From Glycera tridactyla (lineage: Eukaryota), in assembly GCA_965644265.1 (NCBI GenBank), contig OZ286459.1:135532001-135596000 (forward strand): a stretch of 64,000 nucleotides of DNA, read 5' to 3'. The stretch's first letter is position 1, and each line of letters starts with the position of its first letter. Of the stretch, positions 11,271 through 32,000 are shown one piece after another. Made by a program: the position numbers and the translations under genes. A model generated the notes under the pieces. The model was not told the DNA's origin. It worked only from the letters and a program-made list of their open reading frames with translations, and searched no databases.

Positions 11271-14022
11271 CATACGGTTTCGTTGGGTTCTACCATGTAT
11301 TCCTGTTGTACAGTATCGTTCAATATAGGTGGATTCTCGTCAAATGATCGATCGAGATGTTTGGGTGGATGGACATTGGCACATTGATCACACTCGTGAC
11401 TCACACAGGAGACTGTGGCGGGGGTTGCGTCATGGAGGATTGATTGATTCAGTTGGGCTCAACATCTCTTCAACCCAGGCAGGATTATTTGAGACTATCA
11501 TGAGGGAGGTCCCATCCATTGGAAAATGAATGTACAGCATGCATTTTACAACAAAGCTTTCCGCTGCTTTTNNNNNNNNNNNNNNNNNNNNNNNNNNNNN
11601 NNNNNNNNNNNNNNNNNNNNNNNNNNNNNNNNNNNNNNNNNNNNNNNNNNNNNNNNNNNNNNNNNNNNNNNNNNNNNNNNNNNNNNNNNNNNNNNNNNNN
11701 NNNNNNNNNNNNNNNNNNNNNNNATACATGAACATATGTATACTGTTTTATACATCACAATTGCTTAGCTCATTCGAAATAGACTCGAGACCAAGAACAT
11801 TTGCTCAAAATCCGAGCATATTTGTGCCTCATTGGAAAGGGGCCCGAGATCCCGCTCGTCGGAAGGAATTTATCATATTGACAAGATACAAAAATCATGA
11901 CTGGCAACATGAGAGGACTACCTCAGTCCTCAGGTCATTTCCTCCAACTGGAATGCAAAAAATGATATGTGTATAATGGAAAATTGGAAACCTACCCGGA
12001 ACAAGTGTATGTATATATAGGATATATTCCACACGCAGTTGTTATTAGCCACGATACATCTACTTCACATCACATGGTTGGTGATACAGACAGGGTCACT
12101 TAACATATATATGCTGTATTCATCCGGCACATCATGAAACATATTCCACACAGGATAGAATCGATATTTGTACGTCATAACTCAGCATCTCGTACACCCC
12201 ACGTGTTCTTCCTACGCTTCATGCCCCGCCCCCCATGCAAGCAGGTCCAAGCGTATAACCGCGGACGCCCCTCGCATCAGGTCGCTTGTTTGCATTTACT
12301 GGCATAATTGAAAAAAATCCTCAGTGATTGGCAATTGACCAGGCACCGAAGTCAACGTGAACGTGACTGTGACCTAAACTCCCTTCAAAACGTATCTTTG
12401 TTGAGTGATGGATAATCTGTCTCGATATTTAGAATTATATATGCCTTGTTTACCCCGGATTCCACAAAGGATTTCTTAGCCATCAGATAAATCATTTTAA
12501 CAGGTCCTGTAGCAAATTATACAAAAGTAGAAGTAGTAGCGTATTCATACACGCCGCTAACGACATCTCAAACTCACCTCTCAAATCGAATTATACTTTG
12601 GCGTATCAATTTCATTTGTTTTATAAATCAGTTCCGGTAAAAAAATGAGCAATGTAGTCAAAAAGGTGTGCAATGGTCTGCATATGGAACTACAGTTATA
12701 TCACTCTAAACATATTTCACTTGATGAGTACAGCCATGTGCTTGAACGATTTCACGGGGGACACTGCTTTAACTATGTGAGTACCCGGTGTTGATCTGTT
12801 TCATTCTTTGAGAATGATCAGCCATATGAGTGTACGAAGCTGGAAATATTTAGGTTGCGATGAATAGTTGATAATTGATGAATATCTCCCATGTACCCAC
12901 GTCATTATTTGTACAAATGCACGACATAGATGTACACACGCACACACTTACAGACTGAATCACACGCAAACGCACACGCACACGCACATACACATGCACA
13001 CACACTGTTCTCACTGCACACACATTATTCTATCTGCACNNNNNNNNNNNNNNNNNNNNNNNNNNNNNNNNNNNNNNNNNNNNNNNNNNNNNNNNNNNNN
13101 NNNNNNNNNNNNNNNNNNNNNNNNNNNNNNNNNNNNNNNNNNNNNNNNNNNNNNNNNNNNNNNNNNNNNNNNNNTGATTTTGGGATGATCATCTCGTGAA
13201 GACATGACGTCAGCTTGACGCAGAAGCACGTGACCTTGACTTCACAACAAGTCGACGTCATCTACATACAATGCACTTCCGCCGTCAGCAAGAGTTACAA
13301 AATATACACTGGCAAAAAGCCCAACCAGCCCCGGCCACCTCCAGCACACACAACGAACAACCAATTTACTCAATCCTTCTTGGGGTCTCTCGTGTTGCTC
13401 GCGATGACTGGCCATATCCATGTGAATGCCTGCTTTTCAATCGGCTACCAGATGTAAGAGGAAGCATCTTCCCGATATGCATGTACCTCGGGTTGAGAAC
13501 TTCATCTTACCATAGTCATCGTATGCAGATTAACCTACATCAGTGTATGGCCCTCCGCGACCACGCACGCTAAACGACATTTATCAGCATAAGCAACTTG
13601 TTGAAAGCTGGCAGTCATTGGGCTTATGAACATTCGATGGGTAATTGGTGACTTCTTTGAGCAGCATCAGAATTTTTCTGTCATCTTCCCGAGGCCCGGT
13701 TTGTTTATTTGTTACTGTCACCTCAGAGCAAGCAGAAGAGCGCCCTCTTTGAACACCTATAGCAGCACCTTTTTCAACTACGCGAGATGGCAGCACAAAG
13801 CTGTCTCCCGAAAACATCCTCCCCGCAAGGAACGATCTGCTGATATGGCACATCAAAACTGGGATTCGTGTAGAAAGCTAGAATTGAGGACGCTATGTCA
13901 CCAGCATGAGCGAAGTCAGGACGGTCTCGTGCAGGACTTCTGCTGAAAGGCATTCGATTCCTGGCATTCAATTCAGAATTGGTAGGATAAACCAATGAGA
14001 GAATACTGACTGATCGCGGGTC

Positions 14023-14200
14023 TCAGGTGCCCTGCCCTAAGCCAATATCAATCAACTGGCCCTTAGTTCGTGTAGGTCTGTTTAGTTCTATCAACTGTGG
14101 TCGGATAGGGCGACTTGGTTGGTATTTGGGCGAGCGTCCCAGTAAAAGTAGAATTGCATCAACTGTTGTGCATAGTTCCGACTCAAAATTGTTCATACGC
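14023..14200 (-). CDS. erg: ERG last coding exon: second half of the coiled coil to TGA
   Basis: tgttttttcag|(E)[25 protein letters not shown]; phase 2 completes GA+G. It matches the ERG coiled-coil pattern (hERG RLETRLSADMATVLQLL). AATAAA on the minus strand at 13709-13704. Confidence 0.85.
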
Positions 14201-17200
14201 CTGAAAAAACAAAAGACATACATTTAATCCATGTAGAATATAAAGCAGTAATGTGTGCCCTGGCCTTACACGTGACAACAGAAAGTATTCATATTCCTCA
14301 CTATCGAACTTCCATTTCGATTGAAAATTCCAGCGACTTATTTAGACTTTTTCAGAACTTTCCAGCCTGACTGTGCTCTTTATGTCCACTGTCCCAGGGA
14401 TGTTGAAATATTCATTATTCGATGGGCGAGTATTTCACTGATGCATGGGGTGACATTTTGCGTACTGAATGCTCTTATTTTATCAAGTCAAGGAGCATTT
14501 AGCCGCTCATGTATGATGCGTCTAAAGGAGAGGCATGGGGTTCTCAGGATTGCTTGCCAGAGAGCTTGTAGCGACTATGCATTCTCTTGTATATGCTACC
14601 AATGAACGTGACCGCGATATGTGAGGTAGTATCAACATTTTCGGACCACATTCACCACCACCACCACCGCCCAACCACCACCACCACCACTACTACAACT
14701 ACCATAGTTGAAGGAGGGCAATGCGAAGATAATTAAGTAGATACTCGAACTTCATTCATATGGTCTTTCATACTATGAACGTAGAAAGATACTGAGCATG
14801 ATATACCCCGTCCTCCTAATAATTATGATCGAATACAGTATAGGATATGATTGGGTTTCACTCACTCTGTTATACTGTGTTACCGATTATCAATATCCTC
14901 TAACTCACTCTATTATACTGTGTGACCAATCATCAATAACATCCCTTACTCACTCTGTTATACTGTGAAACCAGCAATATCCTCTTACTCACTCTGTTAT
15001 ACTGTGAAACCGATTATCAATATCCTCTTACTCACTCTGTTATACTGTGTAACCGATTATCAATATCCTCTTACTCACTCTGTTATACTGTGTAACCGAT
15101 TATCAATATCCCCTTACTCACTCTGTTATACTGTGTAAGCGATTATCAATATCCCCTTACTCACTCTGTTATACTGTGCAACCTATTATCAATATTCTCT
15201 TACTCACTCTATTATATTGTGTAATCGATTATCATATCCTCTTACTCACTCTGTTATACTATGTAACCCATTATCAATATTCTCTTACTCACTCTGTTAT
15301 ACTGTGTTACCCATTATCGATATTCTCTTACTCACTCTGTTATACTATGTAACCCATTATCAATATTCTCTTACTCACTCTGTTATACTATGTAACCCAT
15401 TATCAATATTCTCTTACTCACTCTGTTATACTGTGTAACCGATTATCAATATCCTCTTACTCACTCTGTTATACTGTGTAACCGATTATCAATATCGTCT
15501 TACTCACTCTGTTATACTATGTAACCCATTATCAATATCCTCTTACTCACTCTGTTATACTATGTAACCCATTATCAATATCTTCTTACTCACTCTGTTA
15601 TACTATGTAACCCATTATCAATATTCTCTTACTCACTCTGTTATACTGTGTAACCGATTATCAATATCCTCTTACTCACTCTGTTATACTGTGTAAGCGA
15701 TTATCAATATCCTCTTACTCACTCTGTTATACTGTGTAACCGATTATCAATATCCTCTTACTCACTCTGTTATACTGTGTAAGCGATTATCAATATCCTC
15801 TTACTCACTCTGTTATACTATGTAACCCATTATCAATATCCTCTCACTCACTCTGTTATACTGTGTAACCGATTATCAATATCCTCTTACTCACTCTGTT
15901 ATACTGTGTAACCGATTATCAATATCCTCTTACTCACTCTGTTATACTGTGTAAGCGATTATCAATATCCTCTTACTCACTCTGTTATACTATGTAACCC
16001 ATTATCAATATCCTCTTACTCACTCTGTTATACTATGTAACCCATTATCAATATCCTCTTACTCACTCTGTTATACTGTGTAACCGATTATCAATATCCT
16101 CTTACTCACTCTGTTATACTGTGTAAGCGATTATCAATATCCTCTTACTCACTCTGTTATACTGTGTAACCCATTATCAATACTCTCTTACTCACTCTGT
16201 TATACTATGTAACCCATTATCAATATTCTCTTACTCACTCTGTTATACTATGTAACCCATTATCAATATCCTCTTACTCACTCTGTTATACTATGTAACC
16301 CATTATCAATATCCTCTTACTCACTCTGTTATACTATGTAACCCATTATCAATATTCTCTTACTCACTCTGTTATACTGTGTAACCGATTATCAATATCC
16401 TCCAGACTATTGATACGACTCGGGTAGTGGTCAGCGTTGGCATGCACGTCGTATTCGATGGCTAATGGTGGGCCCATGATGTCGAGCTGGCCCGTACTTG
16501 AGCTAGATTTGGGCAGACACGAGGTGGAGCTGGAGATGGAAGCGATGGGGGAGAGACCCATACCACGTGGGTGATGAGGATGTCGCGTCACGGCCGCAGA
16601 ACGTTGGTGTGACGGTGGCGAAGCACGTCGACGTCGAGGTCGACGTTCGCTGCTCGACGAGTCCAGAATACTACGTTGACCCACGGAGTTGGCTGAAAAT
16701 GTCAATACCAGAGATTGCAATTAGTAGTGTGAACAACCAGTTCATTGTCCATTCCACATTTTGAGACAAACAAAACATAAACCATCACGATGAGAATGTA
16801 TTTTATCTCTCGGGGGCAGATATTGAGGGACCTCATTTGTCGAAAATCAGATTTCTCCATTGATTTCTGAGAATTTGTTCGCAAATTCTCTTATGGCATC
16901 ATCGTCAAATCACTTCTTTGCATAATTACCACCTTCTTTGCGCTGTCACGAAATATTAATGATTGTAAAATGATGTCGTTAGTACCTACATCTAGCCTAA
17001 TCTGTCGAAACAATTCTATCCATCATGGAAATCGAGCAAATGGGCAATTTAAGCGATTCAATCATTTGATCATGTCGTTTTTGGTGCTGATTACTGAATA
17101 GCACAGCCTTTTTGAATAGTGTCATCGCTCATATAAATGATCTCATGTTTGCATGATGAGAGCCTTGTGAGATCACATGGCAGGATCATCAAGTCGAATA

Positions 17201-20069
17201 GGATCCGTTCTACTCAATCTCTGTGCACTCGCACCGCTTACCTCGAAAAGATCGTGCGGGTGATTTTCTATAGATTTTCCTGGCCATACTTTGAGTGTGG
17301 ATAGTGCTCTAAGTGGTGTTATGCCAACCTCCAAGTAAACTGGCACAGGTCACTTGGTTGGAAGGTGTAGTTATAGATGTGTCCAATGAGAGAGTATGTC
17401 AGTTTGAGGCGGAGCAGCTTCATTGAAACATTGAATACATTATCTTCTGTGGGAATGCAGGAGATTGAGAGCAAACTCTCTAAACTCCAAACCTGGTGAG
17501 CCCTATCCCTACGCCTCAAAATGAGAAATTTGAAAAAGATTGTCTCATCACATGAACCTGGAGATTGGGTTTACATCTCAAAACAAGCGATGGGATCTGC
17601 TGGTTTCCATCTCTGGTATACATTAGCGTGTCGTAAGCGGTGGGTAGTGTGGTAATAAATAGGAAATAAGTACGGTGGCCCATCATGGAGAACATTTCAA
17701 TCTCCATCGTACTACACATTTGTACCGTGATGGAAATATTACCACTTTGGTCATCAATTTCCTCCTAAGTTGAAATGTTTCCACCGCAGTGGAAATATTT
17801 CCACCATAGTTGAAACGTTTTCACCGTAGTGGAAATATTTCCACCATAGTTGAAACGTTTTCACCGCGTTTGAAATTAGTGATACTATGGAGATTGAAAT
17901 TATATCCACTCTTGGCACTTATGGGCCACCGTGAATAGGTGCAGTTGACTAGGGTGTGTGAGTGAGAGAACGCGTGATTAAAGCTCAGTGCCAAGGAAAC
18001 AGTCGAAATCATACAATTGCCTAAAAAATATCATCTGAGTAGCTCATTCTACACCAGTCAGAATAACATTCTACACCAGTCAGAATAACATTCATCGTGA
18101 TCGTCGTGATAATGAGGTATGTCGGAGTGAAACCAACTTCGTATCAACTTTTTTTTAGGCATGACTTCCATGCCAAACTTCTGCACTTCTTTGCAATGGA
18201 AATTGAGTATTTGCATTCCGGAGAGATGGGGGGGGGGGGGGGGGGGGGCGGTGTTGAAACAACAACATACTACCCTAGCATGTATCAAATATGTCATGCG
18301 AGAAATGGGTATAATTCTCATATAGAGACATGCTTGTATAATCTCTGTTCGAGTTTTCGAATAAGGAAATACAAAATACTTTCATGCATTTGATCAATAT
18401 GTTTCAGTACTCAAATGAAAAAAAAGCTTGAAGATCATGTCAAGTACCAGTTTACGATAGTACTGAATGAGAGAGGAATGAGATAATGAAATGAAGAAAA
18501 ATGGCGATGATGAATGTGAGGGTGGATGGTGTTGATTGTGAAGGGTAGTCAGGTGACTGGATTGTATTTGTGGTCATCACCAATAAAGTCGTGAAATAAC
18601 ATAGTCCCTTGATATGTTTAGAGAGAGAGTGAAGAGAGGTAGACAGCGACAGAGACAGAAGCAAAAGAGTACCTGCATATCTAAATAGCGACCTACGTTT
18701 GGCCTCACCGTCGGACAGGTCGGAACTGTCCGCCTGGTGGCGGTGTGAGGCACCAAGGGCAGCGTGTGGCGACAGCTCGACGATGCCCAAACTATGCTGG
18801 TCGTCGTCACTAGACTCCTCCATCGACGACGGCCTCTGGCGGTCAGCACTAGAACTACGTCGTCCTACGAAACCACGACGGAGCGCCGACGATCGCTGAC
18901 CTACGTGCAGACAAAACGTAAATTCATGCGATTCTTCCTGTTCATCCAGTCACACCGATGTAAAATCGTGATGGATATTTCCGTAAGAGCCCATTTTCAC
19001 TAAATAAAATCTCTCTAGCATATGAGGTGAAAATGTCAAGAAATTCCATTAACAAAACCTGAATGAAATTCCATCGAGAGACTTTCTTCAGTAACGGCGT
19101 CCTTTCACCCTCAGCCTTAATGAATACACTATTAAGAAACCGTAAGATATAAGTGAAAAAATCACACGATGGAATATGGCTTTTGCCGCAACAGTGATAT
19201 ATCAACAATGTGGGATATCCGCTACAATGAATATGTAGTTCAATCGTTTCAATGCACTAAATACAATATTGAAATGTGTCATGGCTTTTGCCACAATAGT
19301 CAGATACCAACGATCCCGAATATCTGCTCCAACGTATTTGTAGTTTTTACCGTTGAAATCCACTAAATACTGTTGAAATATATCATGGCTCTCGCCAGTG
19401 AAATATCAACGATTTGGAATATATGCCCCTTCATATATGTAGTCTCAATCGTTTAAATTCAATAGATAGCGTTGAAATATTACGGCTGTTGTCGCTACAG
19501 TGAGATAACAACAATTCAGACTATCTGCTGCAACATATATGTAGTCTCAATCCCTAGAATGCACTGAATTGTGTTGAAATATCTTCCTCAACCAATTGCA
19601 TGCCGACTGGTATATCAAAAGCTGGCCGTGTGTATAGGAGTCTATTCCCGTATGCCTGCGGCAGCGGTTCCTCCTTTCTTCAGCATTTTCAGTTCTTCAG
19701 TCCGATATAACCCAGTGTGGTTGAAAGGACGTTAAACCCAAACGAACAAACAAAGGATGTCGAGGCTCTTATCGCAATAGTGAAATATCAAACTTCCAGG
19801 ATATCTGCTCCATCATATACATGTATGTAGTTTCTGACTAATTTACTGACTAATGTTTAGAATTAGAATTAGAATTAGAATTAGAATGGCGTGACTGACC
19901 TCGTTCATCGTAGCGGCCTCCTGTGCCACCTTTACACTGTAACCTCGGCCTTCGCTGTCGGATAAACTTGAGTGTCTCCTCGTCCACCGAGGCCGGAGCG
20001 TAACTCGCCAGAAGATCACCCTTCAACAAGCAATTCGACATTGTCAAACTGTATATATATATATATATT

Positions 20070-20129
<60 letters not shown>

Positions 20130-22253
20130 GGTGCATACATGCACATGCACTTTGAAGATAGCGTTCGAAATCCAACATGTTTATTATGCCACACCTGTGT
20201 GATTTTCTATGTGTTAAAGTGGTATGTGATATCACTTGAAATACTCCCCAACCGTCGGGACTACCTTTGCTGATCATTAGCTAACTGGTACCCCAGCCTC
20301 ACATGATATATGAAACTATGTGCTGTTGGATAGGGTACCTATGAGCATGGAAGGTAAACAAGAATTGAAACATGTTTAGAAATCTGTCGTCTCCAAAGTG
20401 GAAAATCAAGTGGGAACAGGAATCATGTTAGAGGGTTCCATTACAATTCAATAAACGTATTTCATGCACGCATACATGTCATATTCATGCATCTAGNNNN
20501 NNNNNNNNNNNNNNNNNNNNNNNNNNNNNNNNNNNNNNNNNNNNNNNNNNNNNNNNNNNNNNNNNNNNNNNNNNNNNNNNNNNNNNNNNNNNNNNNNNNN
20601 NNNNNNNNNNNNNNNNNNNNNNNNNNNNNNNNNNGGTCTATAATAGGTTTGGTGCAGTTATAAAGGAGTTATCCAGCGGGCAATTAATTGCTGCCCTTGG
20701 GCGGGTATCCCTGCCTCTTATTCATCTTCCTGGGATGACCGGCTGATTGGACATGATGAAGAGCCAGCCCGCAGCCAACCTCGCGGCTAAAGCTATCTTC
20801 CTCCAATCTACAATCTTTCTCGTGTCATCAGAGAGAACTACTCGAGCAACAGTAGTCATTTCAAAAAGTCTCGAATGACCTCGAGAAATGAATGCTAGGG
20901 CACCCGCTCTGATTTAGAATATACACAGGCCCTAATCAAAGTGGTATCAAGTACTTTAATGCCAGAAGAGTCCACTTGAAAAAATCAGATGCTTGTGCAG
21001 AGAGATTTCACTCGGACTTTGGTTTTGTGGAATTCAATGGCTGTCCCCTGAGTTGGATACGGTTGATGTGATCTCAAAATCACGAGTTGGTGCTGGAAGC
21101 AAGTTCACTACACCTGAGGATGAGACATATGGTCAAGGAATGTACGAAATACCTACCTCACGCAGGTCGAAGGTCACCCGGAATTTATTGAGAAAATCCC
21201 CGGCGAATTCTGGATACATGTCGAGAATCTCGTGTAAGTCTGTCAGTGTCACCTTGTGGAGATCACAGTAACTAAGTGCTCTGACGCAGTAGTTGGATTT
21301 CCCTATACTAGCGGGGTCGCCCACTATTTGCGGCCTCAAATTCTCGCCAAATATATCATCCTGGCCTGAAATAGAAAAATTATGATGAGTCGATCCAAAT
21401 GTAGCAATCACACGCCTAGTGTAGAATATATGCTTTAATTACAGTCAAACTTGTCCTAAGCATGGAGCCAATGGATGTGAAAAGTGTCCGTGCTTGGTGC
21501 AGGTCTACGCTTAGTACAGGTCAGATATGGTGAAAAATACTCTGGTGGGATGAATAGGATCCCGTCGCTTAGTACACGTCTTGCTTAGGTCAAGTTCAAC
21601 TGTAGGTCAAAAGCGATTCATCGGCCGACAGATGAATATCTTCGACTTTCTGTGATGAAGTCTACAGATGAAAAACTACAAACCGAGACCAGTTGCATTC
21701 ATAGTAATAAATCGCTTCTTGGATGGTGGACCTTATCGTCATATATATCGAACTGAAATTTCATCTTCTGTTGAGGACGCCAATGTAGGAGTCCTGGAAG
21801 AACCCACCCATACGCATTTCATTGGCGTCTCAATATGGCCCTGGTGGTGTTCATGAGATGTATAACGATGAACAACCTGTCTAATAGTGCGGTTGGATCC
21901 ATTTGAACTCACCAAGAATGGCCATGACGATGTCCTCGCGTAATATCTCTATGGAGCCACGTGCGATGAAATAGATGGCGTCGAGAATATCACCCGGATG
22001 TATTAATGTGTCACCAGGTGGCGCGTGAGTCGACTTGAACTTCATGGACAACACACGTAAACAACCTGCAAACAAGATTGAACTAGTCTTCAGTCTAGTG
22101 GCTATCATTCTCTTACTTTCATGCTGATTTGTGATTGCAGGAATTTTCCAGCATGCACCAAGCCTAGCTTTAACGGATATTCGATTCCAAAAACAATATT
22201 ATTTTATTCTTCAAGTAGTTCATCAGTCATTATATTGGTTGACAAGTGAAACC

Positions 22254-22345
<92 letters not shown>

Positions 22346-25300
22346 TACAGGCTCAAAGGGACATGTGTAGCCAGACAGATGGACAGACAGTCAGAAATAG
22401 AGATAAACAGATAGACGAATGGACAGCCAGACAAGATGATACACTGACATTCGAAAGATAGACAGACGATACACTGACAGTCAGAAAGATAGACAGATAC
22501 ACAGATAGACAAACATGTAGACAGAAAGACAGACAGACATCCAGAAAGACAGACATACAAATAGACAGATAGAGAAATAGACAGACAAATAGACCGACAG
22601 ACACTGGAACGCTTTAGATTAGCTCAACGACGGACAGTTCCAAGTATGTTAAACGAAATGCGTCGAAAGAACGTTGATTCCATGCTTAAAATATGTGTGT
22701 ACTATGTAGCAAATATAGCCGGGGCAAAAAATACTTGTCACAAGTTCAGTGATGTTTGAAGTTAAACAATGATATGAGTAAACGTTTCCGAATTGCATCT
22801 ATCGTGTTTCACATGGCAGAAGGAATCGTTCGGTGGAGATGGATGTTTGGTACTGTGAACCATACCTGGACTGGCCCCCTTGAATGCAGGGCAGTTATAA
22901 AGTAGCGTGCGGTTGAGGTGTAAGCATATATCTGCCTGTAGGCACTCAGGAAAACTCTTCAGTACCTGAAAAACAGAAGAATTATAATTGACAGTCAGAT
23001 ACACCAGGGAATACACACATAGCGGTAGATGAAAGAGTTGGCACAGTAAAGTAAGAATTCTGCATTGTAGCATCAAGCAGGTTATCCGTTCCTGATGACA
23101 TTGATCTGGTCATATACAAATGGATTGTACATGCTAGATGTTCTCCCAGGTGTGATCATCAAAAAGTGTCAGATGCAAGATACCATATATGAATACTCCA
23201 TCGATACAGGTGTGTACCGAATATATATATACACGAGCACAATAGGAAGAAATAATATGGATTCCTTGCATCAGTCTATAAGCCTACTCTCCCTCTGTAA
23301 CCTTTGCTCTATATGTGTACTGTGTACCACGTATCATCCATCTGTACGTATTACAAAATCAAATTCAACTAAACAATATTAATATCAACTATTGAGGGGT
23401 ATATATTGAAATTGGCATGTCTTGTGAGGCTGTCGAAGTTGGCAAGTGGAAGAAACGTAGATAGCCCCTGATCCCACATTGTTTGGCATATGAATTTCAG
23501 TGAACTGTATAAATGGGTTTGGTAGCAATATCAAGTCCTTACCGCAACAATAGGGGGTCATTTGAGAGAATAGTTGGCACATCTCTCTGTACTATATGGC
23601 TCTGTAGTTCTTTGTTTCAAGCACCGCGTGTTGCTCAAAGATAAAGCTTGAGTATCAGCTTCCAGCCAGTTACACAGATGGATATGACATATTTAGTTTC
23701 ATCCTATTCTGGTTAGATAGGTAGAGGTATATCTGAACTGTCAGCTGATTCCCCATTTATCCTGTACTCATGCTTCATGGAAGTGATGTCTGTAGAGGAC
23801 AGAGGATCTAGCTTCCACTGACCAGGAACACACGGCGTATATATTTCTTGGATCAACTCGTATATTCCCCTACACACGTACTGTACAGATTTCTGAACGT
23901 GTATTTATGGACACTGGATGGGTAACCGGGGGACGTACATCGTCAATAATATCTACACGACGTCACAAGAAAGTCCTAGATTAAAGAAACAGCAAGAGTG
24001 GTCAATGTACCTTAGATTTCCATCCATGCGTATCAGAAGGCCGCAGGGCTTCAGAGAAATAGTCTCTGCCCCTAGGACATCTTCTTCCGTGTACATGGGA
24101 ATGGTTCCTAATCTGATACTAAAGGGCTATTGTTATGGCTGAAATGACCCCCAGAAGTTGGCATAGCAACGTTGATGTGTGCATTTTGGAGGTGGAATAC
24201 AGCTGTCAGCCCCACACTGAGTGACTTCCGCTGGTCACAGTTGCGCGCTTCACCACCGGAAGTTGTCACGGTCGGTTGATCACGTGTGAGGCACCGCATT
24301 GCATACGGATGACTGGAATATCACGTGATTAGCATGGGAATCACGTGGACACTAGCTCAACCCCAGGAGATCAAATATTTCATAATTCAATTCAAACCCA
24401 TACCATTTTCATGCTCATTTTCATGCTCAAATGATGAGNNNNNNNNNNNNNNNNNNNNNNNNNNNNNNNNNNNNNNNNNNNNNNNNNNNNNNNNNNNNNN
24501 NNNNNNNNNNNNNNNNNNNNNNNNNNNNNNNNNNNNNNNNNNNNNNNNNNNNNNNNNNNNNNNNNNNNNNNNNNNNNNNNNNNNNNNNNNNNNNNNNNNN
24601 NNNNNNNNNNNNNNNNNNNNNNNNNNNNNNNNNNNNNNNNNNNNNNNNNNNNNNNNNNNNNNNNNNNNNNNNNNNNNNNNNNNNNNNNNNNNNNNNNNNN
24701 NNNNNNNNGTACACAAATAGTCACGGACTGCATACGAGGTCAGGGCTCCCAAGTATTGATCTTAAAATAGAGAAGCAGCCATAAGATACATGTCACTATG
24801 ATTGAATGATGGCGTGAGTTCCTATCTTGGATCTGGAATTGATGGTCCTCTGCTAGCGGTGGTGCTATAATATGTGACTGGAAAGCAGTAACAATCATAC
24901 CCCTCCTCAGCTTACACAGAGGAGAGTTTAGAAATGTTCTCAGTCATGACACCCAGGAAGCAACTACTCCGAATATATTCAAGCGCAAATTTGCGCCTGA
25001 CCCGCAATGTGTCTCACACAACCAAGTCAGAACAACTAAGTATTTGAACAAGCCAGTTATCTACTTATCTGACGTCTGGATACAGGCAAAAGCGTAGGTC
25101 GCATGCTGCACATATGTGCCGAGGGTCCCAAAGACTGGTCCACCGTGTACCAGCTCACTCGGGTCCACCCGGGCATGGGCGCATCATGAGATCTCACTTT
25201 GCATAATGAAATATATTATCTTCAACTGAAATCTAGCACATAGCATGACAATGCATGCATTCTGGCCGGAATGCGCTGTGGACATATGAGGGTAAGCGGA

Positions 25301-28300: not shown

Positions 28301-28997
28301 TAATTTCAATACATATCACTACATAACCGAGACCAATACAGACAGTGATCGACAGGAATCTAACATTGAATGTAGCCCATCTTGGGGCACAGGCTGATAT
28401 ACATCCCACGAAACTTTCATGTCGCGTAGTACTACATAGACTCATAAAAGCAATAAATGAAAGAAGAAGATTGACTTCTTGGAGAGAACAGGCACAGCAA
28501 GTAATAGGCGATGTAACTGCTAACATAAGAGTGGGTGTACTGGGTGAGTATGTCAGCATTTGGTGGAAAGGGAACTTCGTGGGATGTATTTCAAACTATA
28601 CCCCAAAGGTTTCTAGCTTCAACGACAACGACGATGATTGACTGGGATACTCACGCTATTCATATCGATTCCGTTAGTGTAAGACCATGTGTGCTGGTAG
28701 GACTCAATGAGACGGTTTGCTAGTGGCTTGGGAATGTGATGGAAGAGAATAAACTCCTTGATGGACGTTTGCATCTCATGGTACTCCTCTGTACCCTGGT
28801 AAAGACGTAACATGATGGACGAAACATTGCCAAAGATCGCCGCACTCATCAGCGCTGCAAGCCAATATCAAATCTGGGGTTACACAGGGTGGATATATCG
28901 GTAAATAGACAGACAGAAAGGCATACGAACGGGCATGGAGGCACACATATGGAGATGGATGGATGGATGGATGGATGGATGGATGGATGGATGGATG

Positions 28998-29038
<41 letters not shown>

Positions 29039-32000
29039 TGACAAAACAGATATTTGACTCGATGATGGACAATACGAGCGATATTATGACAAGCCAAATA
29101 CTTATGTTGCCTGAGAGGATGAGGATTGGAAATTATCAGAAGTTAATCAGTCTCAATACAGCAATGTCTGACAAAAATTCTCCCATCTCATATACAAATG
29201 CAGACAAAAGGGACACCTTCACCGGAATATTTGATCTCGCTGGTTCAATGAATCACATTTTTAGGAAGACATTGAGTTCAGGGCTAGTTGTCCAGCAAAT
29301 GGACACAATGACAATGACGATGAAATCTTAATGATTCTGGAGATTTGAGCTTTTACCGAATTTGAAAACGACCGAGACAATAATTGCCACTGGAAAAGGA
29401 CGACACCCAGTTCTCCTGAGTAGATTTGACATTGTTGCCTCTACCAATTGTGTGCTTCCATAAGCAGAGTCAGAGTGGATTACCAGAGTCAGGGTGGATT
29501 GAGAAGAAACCGAATACCGACCCCCTCTCTCACACCTTGGGGAATTATATATCTGTAGTGTGAGACGAGATATTATCTGAAATATGCTTGTTCCACCATG
29601 ATGGTACTACCAAGTCGCTGACATAGAGAGCACAGAGATTTTCTGAGAGAAACTATCAAGATGCCAATCAGACACGCCTCGAAGACTTCTGGATACGGGA
29701 GCCACCCTTATGTGTCTTGGGAATGGTTACAGGCCGTTCACTGAGACAAAACGAGACAAAACATTTGTTCTCTGTTGTTTTCATTGGGAAAAGTTATATT
29801 TGAGAGAACACACTATTATCGGTGATGTCTGCGAAATGTCCAGAAAGGCATGTGTCAGCAGGTAAAGTCACCGTTTGACCTATGCTTTATTCGTTCCACA
29901 AATGTACCAAAGGAGCGTGGGCACAGTACAGGGGTATCTCCATGAGAAATGTATCGGCTTCAAGCAATCACCGAGTTGCCAACGTGGTTGTCCTGTCTAT
30001 CGAAACCCGTAACTCTCACCCACCTGACCATGAGTACCAACACTGGCACTGAACGACATCACGATATAGGGCACCCAAGGCAAAGATGGGCCGCCCCAAA
30101 CATACCTTTGAATGTGAGCATGCCTTATATTTGCCATTCAGTGAATGGCGGGTTGGGTGTATAACGTATCATTGGACCAGCTGGACTATATTGAGATGTC
30201 AATGCTATGCGCATGGATGAGCTCCTTCATGAAACATTGATCTGGGGCCTCGACGGAAATGAAAATTACAGGCAATGGATATCATTTCTTGACTGCATTC
30301 ATTGGATAATTCCACCATAGTTGATGGCAAACCCGGTAATTAAGGGGTTAATACGGGCTTTCCTCACTACTCTCTTCCTGACCTCAGCAGGGGTTCAGGC
30401 ATGCGCAGACAGCCTGATAATTCTAGTTCCGGCAACAAGGCCTCCTCACTATCAATGGTAACCAGTAGGGGTATTACTTTATATCCTATTTTTCATATTT
30501 ATCCATTTTTCACGGGCTCTTCACAGCTTCCATATATATAAATAGGGAGACAAGTTATCATTCTAGAGAATATGGGAATAATTGCACGAGAGTGAACTAG
30601 GAAATTTCTGGTTTGAAATTAGCTATCTTTCTGGATTTCTGCTCTGAGTAATCATATGCAGAGTGATAGAAGTCAACACACCCTTCCTCCTCCTCCAAAC
30701 ATAGCCGCCTGTGATGTTGGTATGTGGTTATTACCTCACAGCTCAGATCAATGGTCAGCTGGTGAGAGTGAAATCAGATATGTGACTTTTATTATCACAA
30801 CTTCCAGTTACATGACAGGGAGAGCTAGTGACCACAATACATTTTTACAAGGGGGTCGGGACTAACTCACCAGGAGGTCATTGATTAAAGCGCCTTATCT
30901 GGAATTACTGAATTTTAATGAGATAACCCTGTTGCATTACACAAGCAGGCTTTCATCATCGTCTCCGGAACAAGTATTATTGCCACTCATTTCACCCTCC
31001 AAGACTAGAGAAGAGCTAGTGAGGAAAGCCCGTATTGATTCAATGGGTGATTCTTAACGTCTCTTCAATCTAGGTAACAGTTGAGGAGTACTCACAACCC
31101 AGTAACATGGCGAATATGGAGAAGATCTTCTCGGCGTTCGTGTTCGGCGCCACGTTGCCGAATCCTATACTGGTGAGACTGGTGAAGGTGAAATAGAGTG
31201 CTGTGATATACTTGGACCGAATATCTGGTCCCGTGGTAGAGTCATTAGCTAAATAAGGCGTGTTTGTGCTATTGGCTAGCCCGTCTAGCCAGCTGATTGG
31301 CTCTTTCAAACGAGGTCGCTCCACGTAGGCGATTGCATAGAATATACACGCCAGCCAATGAGCGATGAGCGTGAAGGTTGCCATGAGCAACAACAACACG
31401 GCCGCTCCATATTCGCTGTACTGGTCGATTCGCCTGGCAACCCTTAGCAACCGCAATAACCGAGCTGTTTTGAGCACACCCGTCACCGTCATAGTCTGCA
31501 ACAGGAGCAATAATTGAAGAAATGAATAACTGGTCTCATCGAGGTACATCTGCTCCCGCCTACGAACAGAAACTTAAGATTGATGAGAGAAACGATGACG
31601 TGAAACTAAGGTCCTCTTTAGAATTGTATGATGCTTTCCTATGATCGAGCACACACATCCTGAGCGTCAGTTCCAATTTCATTGATCTCGATTCTTTCAG
31701 GGAGAAAAGAATCGAGCACCGTCAATGCTGGGACTTTCAGGTAAAACTACAATCCACCGATGATGAGAATGTTTATATATGAAGCTGAATGTGCTCATTC
31801 CATGTAGATTAAATAGCTTGTAAAACGCATGAGAACTGAATCTGAAAGGTGAGAGTTATAGTTGTGAATAGCAAGATGTAAGATTATATTTGCGGAAAAT
31901 CATATAAATGAGGAGAATGTTGATGATGAATGATATATGAGCGATGATGTGGAAAGTAGTAATGCACTGCACACTCACCTGGACAGCGAATCTAATGAAG

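Follow-up and report, generated by a model that had tools for sequence, protein, structure and literature searches.

The last intron of an evidently ERG (KCNH2)-type K+ channel gene, located in the 64,000-nucleotide window of DNA analysed here, starts inside a 43-bp minisatellite whose 36 units each consist of the end of the preceding exon together with its 5' splice donor. An exon-end/splice-donor array of this form had been described in an earlier note on this DNA, and our analysis confirms that it is real. We regard it, with a probability of roughly three in four, as a lineage-specific exon-intron-boundary minisatellite that is tolerated as a neutral or slightly deleterious by-product of repeat instability, with donor 1 being used and the array leaving with the intron. 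The array is a boundary minisatellite of a kind already known from the F7-type VNTR and from the so-called mirages, and this ERG case is a new one.

An exon-end minisatellite in an ERG-type channel gene

Exon-sized open pieces on the minus strand show the hallmarks of EAG-family channels, and motifs of the C-linker and of the cyclic-nucleotide-binding homology domain are visible in them. When the S4-pore piece was compared with solved structures, human KCNH2 (5va3 and others) was matched with an E value of 6e-52 and 179 bits, compared to approximately 122 bits for KCNH1 and KCNH5. PF00027 (cNMP_binding) on 21884-22198, which is an exon fragment, reached an E value of 5e-5 and 23.7 bits, below the cutoff of 27.5 bits. 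By homology, the host gene is of ERG (KCNH2) type; the placement of the array in an ERG K+ channel gene by the earlier note agrees with the best match of the S4-pore piece to KCNH2 and with the Ion_trans domain found. The gene's 5' part is located either past 58621 or outside the window. The features are listed below in the order of the gene.

58232-58621, minus strand: exon-sized open piece, S1
47961-48248, minus strand: open piece, S2-S3; Ion_trans PF00520, E 1.5e-7, above cutoff
31073-31573, minus strand: open piece, S4-pore with SIGFGNV; KCNH2 structures match
28622-28867, minus strand: exon-sized open piece, S6 and C-linker
22765-23109, 21884-22198 and 21136-21438, minus strand: exon-sized open pieces, cyclic-nucleotide-binding homology domain
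18697..18902, minus strand: upstream coding exon, joined to 16692 by RNA contigs and probably beginning at 18900, after a TAG acceptor
16368..16692, minus strand: penultimate coding exon, 325 nt, ending in GA (acceptor from the RNA joint 16692>18697; X1 contig 16368-16518; orthologous exon ends)
14858..16402, minus strand: 43-bp x 36 minisatellite (Tandem Repeats Finder and parsing into units)
16402..16360, minus strand: unit 1, made of the authentic exon end and 8 nt from the start of the intron (unit parsing)
16366..16367, minus strand: GT of the authentic first 5' splice site, context AGA/GTGAGTAA, the slash here and below marking the splice junction (unit parsing; intron position and phase common to 7 relatives)
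16364..16366, minus strand: in-frame TGA met when donor 1 is unused (translation)
16359..14858, minus strand: units 2-36, copies inside the intron with one GTGAGT pseudo-donor each (unit parsing)
14201..16367, minus strand: last intron, 2167 nt, made up of 1510 nt of array (8 nt of unit 1 plus units 2-36) and 657 nt of unique sequence (14201-14857)
14653-14690: (GGT)n microsatellite in the unique part of the last intron
14201-14209, minus strand: acceptor of the last intron, ttttttcag, strong
14023..14200, minus strand: last exon, coding part, G plus 58 codons ending GQGT, with TGA at 14025-14023 (translation; RNA contigs; orthologous last exons)

The 3' UTR extends to at least 13281, as indicated by the RNA contigs 13926-14076, 13812-14031, 13382-13726 and 13281-13503. 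For the last exon, no match was obtained in Pfam, in PDB (searched with the single sequence or with a three-species profile) or in a word search. Downstream of the ERG gene, a minus-strand ORF of 991 aa occupies 960-3932.

Tandem Repeats Finder, run on the assembly, placed the array on the minus strand at 14860-16402, with a period of 43, 36.0 copies, 93% matches, 0% indels and a score of 2571. Parsing into units showed that 35 of the 43 bp correspond to the end of the penultimate ERG coding exon and the other 8 to GTGAGTAA, the first 8 nt of the intron, and that unit 1 is coding, exactly as the earlier note had it. Unit 1 reads GAG GAT ATT GAT AAT CGG TTA CAC AGT ATA ACA GA / GTGAGTAA. It is the authentic junction, and the minisatellite-sized units follow it head to tail and in register. 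About 36 tandem donors, most of them keeping GTGAGT, had been claimed; the motif is intact in 36/36 units. Unit 1 has its donor G at 16367 and unit 36 at 14865; beyond unit 36 the intron is unique, again in agreement with the first description. The -3..+8 context of donors 2 and 3 is the same as that of donor 1.

When the 2.04-Gb assembly was searched with the 43-mer consensus, allowing up to 3 mismatches, 29 matches were found, all of them within the array, and the reversed control gave 0. A 401-bp array probe likewise matched this locus only. Since both probes match a single locus, the unit is not part of a dispersed repeat or transposon, and an origin of this type was ruled out, there being no copies elsewhere in the genome. 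A paralogue of the penultimate ERG exon was not found in the 2.04-Gb genome either.

Several other readings of the intron were considered and rejected. Intronic polyadenylation leading to a truncated isoform would be expected to use a signal, and the intron contains no AATAAA and one ATTAAA, located 28 nt upstream of the acceptor. A hidden gene or RNA in the array was dismissed, as there is no notable ORF on either strand and no Rfam family. As for cassette micro-exons within the array, inspection by eye showed that the sole AG (aacAG/A) comes 1 nt ahead of each donor and follows a purine-rich stretch.

Two side observations concern repeats in other introns of the gene. In the 16-kb intron between the S2-S3 and S4-pore exons, a 32-bp x 6.0 minisatellite with 97% matches is located at 44204-44394; on the gene strand, each of its units has TGTGAGTCAGG with a donor-like GTGAGT, and no adjoining exon is evident. 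At 48253-48446, ATCAGC is repeated 32 times at the 3' end of the preceding intron, directly upstream of the S2-S3 exon on the gene strand.

Donor choice, the junction in relatives and RNA evidence

When donor 1 is joined to 14200, GA/G restores the reading frame. Reading past donor 1 gives ACA GAG TGA, and with any of donors 2-36 the TGA at 16366-16364 is in frame and lies 39, 82, 125 ... 1498 nt upstream of the junction, so that the product would lack the last 58 residues. Translation thus bears out the earlier statement that the first donor alone is in frame and that GAG TGA lies beyond it.

Across 8 species, the C-terminal tail is best conserved in the block that the last intron splits. With the two exon translations placed side by side, its hydrophobic residues follow a spacing of 3-4 on both sides of the junction. 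KCNH channels are known to contain a tetramerizing coiled coil at the C terminus (PMC4683259). The split block would fit such a coiled coil of KCNH type, with which it shares the 3-4 hydrophobic spacing, whereas the block itself is without a match to solved structures.

An exhaustive search with the 58-aa translation of the last exon returned one match (P0001), on the 4.1-kb contig L008. There, the exon ends in YADIDKRLGEIN-GA/gtaagt and is followed by a 203-nt intron, after which the next exon begins (E). The same contig carries, at L008:3429-3944, an intact intronless ORF for Tctex-1 (dynein light chain) on the same strand, 2.7 kb downstream of the ERG stop. When the penultimate exon was used in a word search, P0002 on L009 was found, where the exon end SLADIDERLENIN-GA/gtcagt is followed by an 86-nt intron and the next exon begins (E). 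A profile of the three penultimate exons retrieved 20 exon-sized ORFs from other assemblies. Thirteen of these (14 counting L008) end in L..I(N)E-stop or L..L(H)E-stop, reading through GA/GTAA or GA/GTGA. Most of the remaining ORFs (P0009-P0011, P0014, P0017, P0018) stop at this point too, their final residue being A, S, M or T.

The DNA across the junction was compared in seven relatives (L008, L009, L015-L019). All seven have a phase-2 intron at the same codon, after RLxxIN-GA/GT, and a last exon that starts with RM..FE..LC.TVD.IL. The boundary is single-copy in 7/7: a 28-nt probe (up to 5 mismatches) gave one match per locus, and no tandem repeat spans the junction. A check for a single-copy state in related species had been suggested in the earlier note, and this is the state that all seven display. 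Because the seven relatives share the intron position with a single-copy boundary, the site that is ancestral and productive is donor 1, and the 43-bp array is a derived, lineage-specific feature. The closest relative found is 61% identical in the penultimate exon; therefore, the expansion is not datable more finely.

Contigs from three RNA runs of small size (X1-X3, with 6-7% of the words of a 7.2-kb stretch) were placed on 13200-19150, where they fall only on exons, the 3' UTR and dispersed repeats. X1 and X2 contain a joint 16692>18697 that reads CT..AC on the plus strand and GT..AG on the minus strand, indicating that X1-X3 are RNA and that the penultimate exon is 16692..16368. A contig of X1 covers 16368-16518 with 0 mismatches and stops exactly at the last base of the exon. 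Coverage of the last exon and the 3' UTR extends from 14076 to 13281, with a depth of 2-6, the same as that of the upstream exons.

No array sequence was detected in the RNA contigs of the three runs (bins 14792-16184 are zero), at a depth of 2-6 where contigs show presence, not absence. The unique part of the last intron was also without an RNA contig in the three runs (depth 2-6). The sequence of unit 2 is in no contig, and the bin 16185-16383 is covered by the last 16 nt of the exon only. A contig spanning the junction 16368>14200 was not found in the three runs at this depth of 2-6. Retention of the array in mature RNA would make the 31-mers common to its units up to 35-fold deeper than words of the exons, and they should then assemble. 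The lack of array contigs therefore argues against a major use of distal donors.

It should be noted that the X2 contig carrying the 18697/16692 junction ends at 16401, one base into unit 1. A branch at this point would fit a polymorphism at 16400, which is unit position 3 and is variable among the array units. In the upstream intron, a dispersed repeat at 16869-17425 has RNA contigs in all three runs, with a depth of up to 54. These contigs have loose ends into other sequence and probably represent an expressed transposon family.

Variation among the units

Six other units have exactly the sequence of unit 1, which is also the array consensus. Altogether, 17 unit types were distinguished, the common ones being the exon type CGG/CAC, GGG/CAT with or without GAT>AAT, and CGC/CAC. 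The types are interspersed along the array (ABCCBDEACCEA...) with recurring two-unit motifs, and indels occur only in the distal units 28, 34 and 35. Interspersed types and a degenerate distal edge are the ordinary picture of minisatellite turnover by slippage or unequal exchange, with edge units escaping homogenisation. Edge units are likewise left unhomogenised in the amphioxus mirages (PMC3087553, PMC3902484).

Every variant named in the earlier note was found among the units. The commonest is C>G at unit position 16 (CGG>GGG), which occurs in 15 units and only in intronic copies; G>C at position 18 (CGC) is present in 5 units, G>A at position 4 (GAT>AAT) in 9 and C>T at position 24 (CAC>CAT) in 13. 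In the exon, CGG>GGG would change an arginine that is R in the three-species alignment and in 15/19 further relatives. It had been suggested that conversion within the array could rewrite the codons. This is possible in principle, but it has left no sign, as unit 1 equals the consensus and the R is kept.

The variants are unevenly distributed along the unit. After multi-base indels had been collapsed, 26 distinct variant events were counted. Unit positions 1-24 account for 22, which leaves 4 for positions 25-43, the last 11 exon nt and the 8 intron nt (11.5 expected; P 0.002, in a post hoc test on one array that assumes uniform mutation). None of the 26 events lies in -3..+6 across the 36 donors (P 0.002, by the same post hoc test). 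When the three degenerate units were excluded, positions 25-43 held 1/14 events (P 0.003) and -3..+6 held 0/14 (P 0.04). The variable half of the unit has its only CpG and the slippage-prone GATATTGATAAT. Low variation of the donor-bearing half may reflect mutation bias or constraint, two causes that one array cannot separate.

Origin of the array and known counterparts

According to the reading that we prefer, tandem duplication would have affected 43 bp lying across the 5' splice site of the penultimate exon. Slippage or unequal exchange would then have led to 36 units, in an ancestrally short intron. Unit 1 would have stayed the coding exon end with a working donor, and the 35 downstream pseudo-donors would be removed with the intron. 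We infer near-exclusive use of donor 1 from orthology, from the lack of array RNA and from the analogy with the systems described below. The array would also be neutral; pure neutrality with uniform mutation, however, would predict more variation than is present in the donor-bearing half of the unit.

The closest experimental counterpart is intron 7 of human F7: its VNTR has monomers of 37 bp, and the first of these lies across the exon 7/intron 7 boundary (Borensztajn et al. 2006, PMC1557585). In 50 constructs, the pseudo-sites of F7 were found to be functional but silent; the most upstream of 5-9 identical donors was selected in several cell types, and it won even against pseudo-sites strengthened to 91% of the consensus value (PMC1557585). 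In both F7 and the ERG array, unit 1 lies over the exon-intron boundary and is followed by identical intronic pseudo-donors and a single downstream acceptor. However, F7 has 5-9 units of 4 exon and 33 intron nt, whereas the ERG array has 36 units of 35 exon and 8 intron nt, and each ERG copy, unlike those of F7, carries the exon-side context too. Exclusive use of the first donor is an experimental result in F7 and is inferred in the ERG array.

Comparable introns are listed in the introduction of the same paper. Intron 2 of IFI6 (6-16) has 25 pseudo-sites and intron 13 of CBS has 15-20 repeats, and in both cases the authentic site and the two nearest pseudo-sites are used, while in LMNB2 and PDGF the authentic site alone is used (PMC1557585). 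IFI6 and CBS resemble the ERG gene in having many pseudo-donors after the authentic one. They differ in that their two nearest pseudo-sites are used constitutively, whereas none was seen in use in the low-depth RNA contigs of the ERG gene; moreover, any use of a pseudo-donor in ERG meets a stop codon at once. In amphioxus, so-called mirages have been described in Adh3, the globin genes BflGb6/9, troponin C and PGBD5; they occur in many genes of one genome and show concerted evolution and diverged edge units, and splicing is not visibly disturbed (PMC3087553, PMC3902484). The globin mirages have 3-6 units, compared to 36 in the ERG array, which belongs to another lineage and a 2.04-Gb genome.

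The precedent of IFI6 and CBS (PMC1557585) raises the question of leaky proximal pseudo-donors: donor 1 would dominate, and donors 2-3 would be used constitutively at a low level, yielding minor stop-containing transcripts as a mere cost. The -3..+8 context that donors 2-3 share with donor 1 is consistent with such leakage, and so is the X1 contig end at 16368, which looks as if it came from a branch of the assembly graph. However, the sequence of unit 2 is in no contig, and F7 uses its first donor exclusively (PMC1557585), as do LMNB2 and PDGF. We therefore consider leakage unlikely.

The depletion of variants around the donors could also mean that the pseudo-donors are not inert, either because U1 binding along the array matters in cis for the ERG transcript or because a process linked to splice sites seeds or amplifies units with intact donors. 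To this we attach a small probability only. The more specific proposal of the earlier note, namely a tuning of splicing, dependent on copy number, by about 35 decoy U1 sites, is unsupported by our data. On this view, U1 binding at the pseudo-donors would send some transcripts, in a proportion set by copy number, towards products that contain a stop, are prone to NMD or are truncated, and ERG output would thereby be tuned. The 36/36 intact donors with 0/26 variant events in -3..+6 (P 0.002, post hoc), the TGA that any later donor leaves upstream of the junction, and the use of pseudo-sites in IFI6 and CBS reported in PMC1557585 are all compatible with it. Yet the array is not conserved, being absent in 7/7 relatives, and alternative donors, which like cross-species conservation would be expected of regulated unproductive splicing, did not appear in RNA: the contigs of the three low-depth runs contain no array sequence, though the flanking exons are present. 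Furthermore, the pseudo-sites of F7 do not compete even when strengthened (PMC1557585), and IFI6 and CBS use the two nearest only. Since the analogues use the first donor, or the first and the two nearest, 35 copies would not be expected to exert a dose effect. The uneven variation along the unit may itself be mutational, given that the only CpG and GATATTGATAAT are in the variable half. Taken together, copy-number-dependent tuning appears highly improbable.

An assembly artefact, in which the array or most of its copies would be missing from the DNA of the animal, is scarcely credible: one mis-assembled mirage has been reported by the amphioxus authors, but here the units are non-identical, with 17 types in structured interspersion and decay at the distal edge only, and the array lies within a contig of more than 135 Mb.

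As a boundary minisatellite, the ERG array represents a clean case, with 36 donors identical in -3..+6, each preceded by 35 nt of near-identical exon context; they share a single acceptor, and every wrong choice runs straight into a stop. The array thus provides a natural test, in a distant invertebrate and at high copy number, of the rule derived from F7 in mammalian cells that the most upstream site wins.

The array also bears on models of intron gain and on intron growth, from 86-936 nt in 6/7 relatives to 2167 nt here. The orthologous introns of the seven relatives are 86, 182, 203, 361, 524, 936 and 2463 nt long. The longest of them, in L016, contains an unrelated 9-bp x 171 minisatellite (TTCCCCGTG) at L016:4618-6160, clear of the splice site. 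The orthologous last intron has evidently been swollen independently in L016, by a different repeat.
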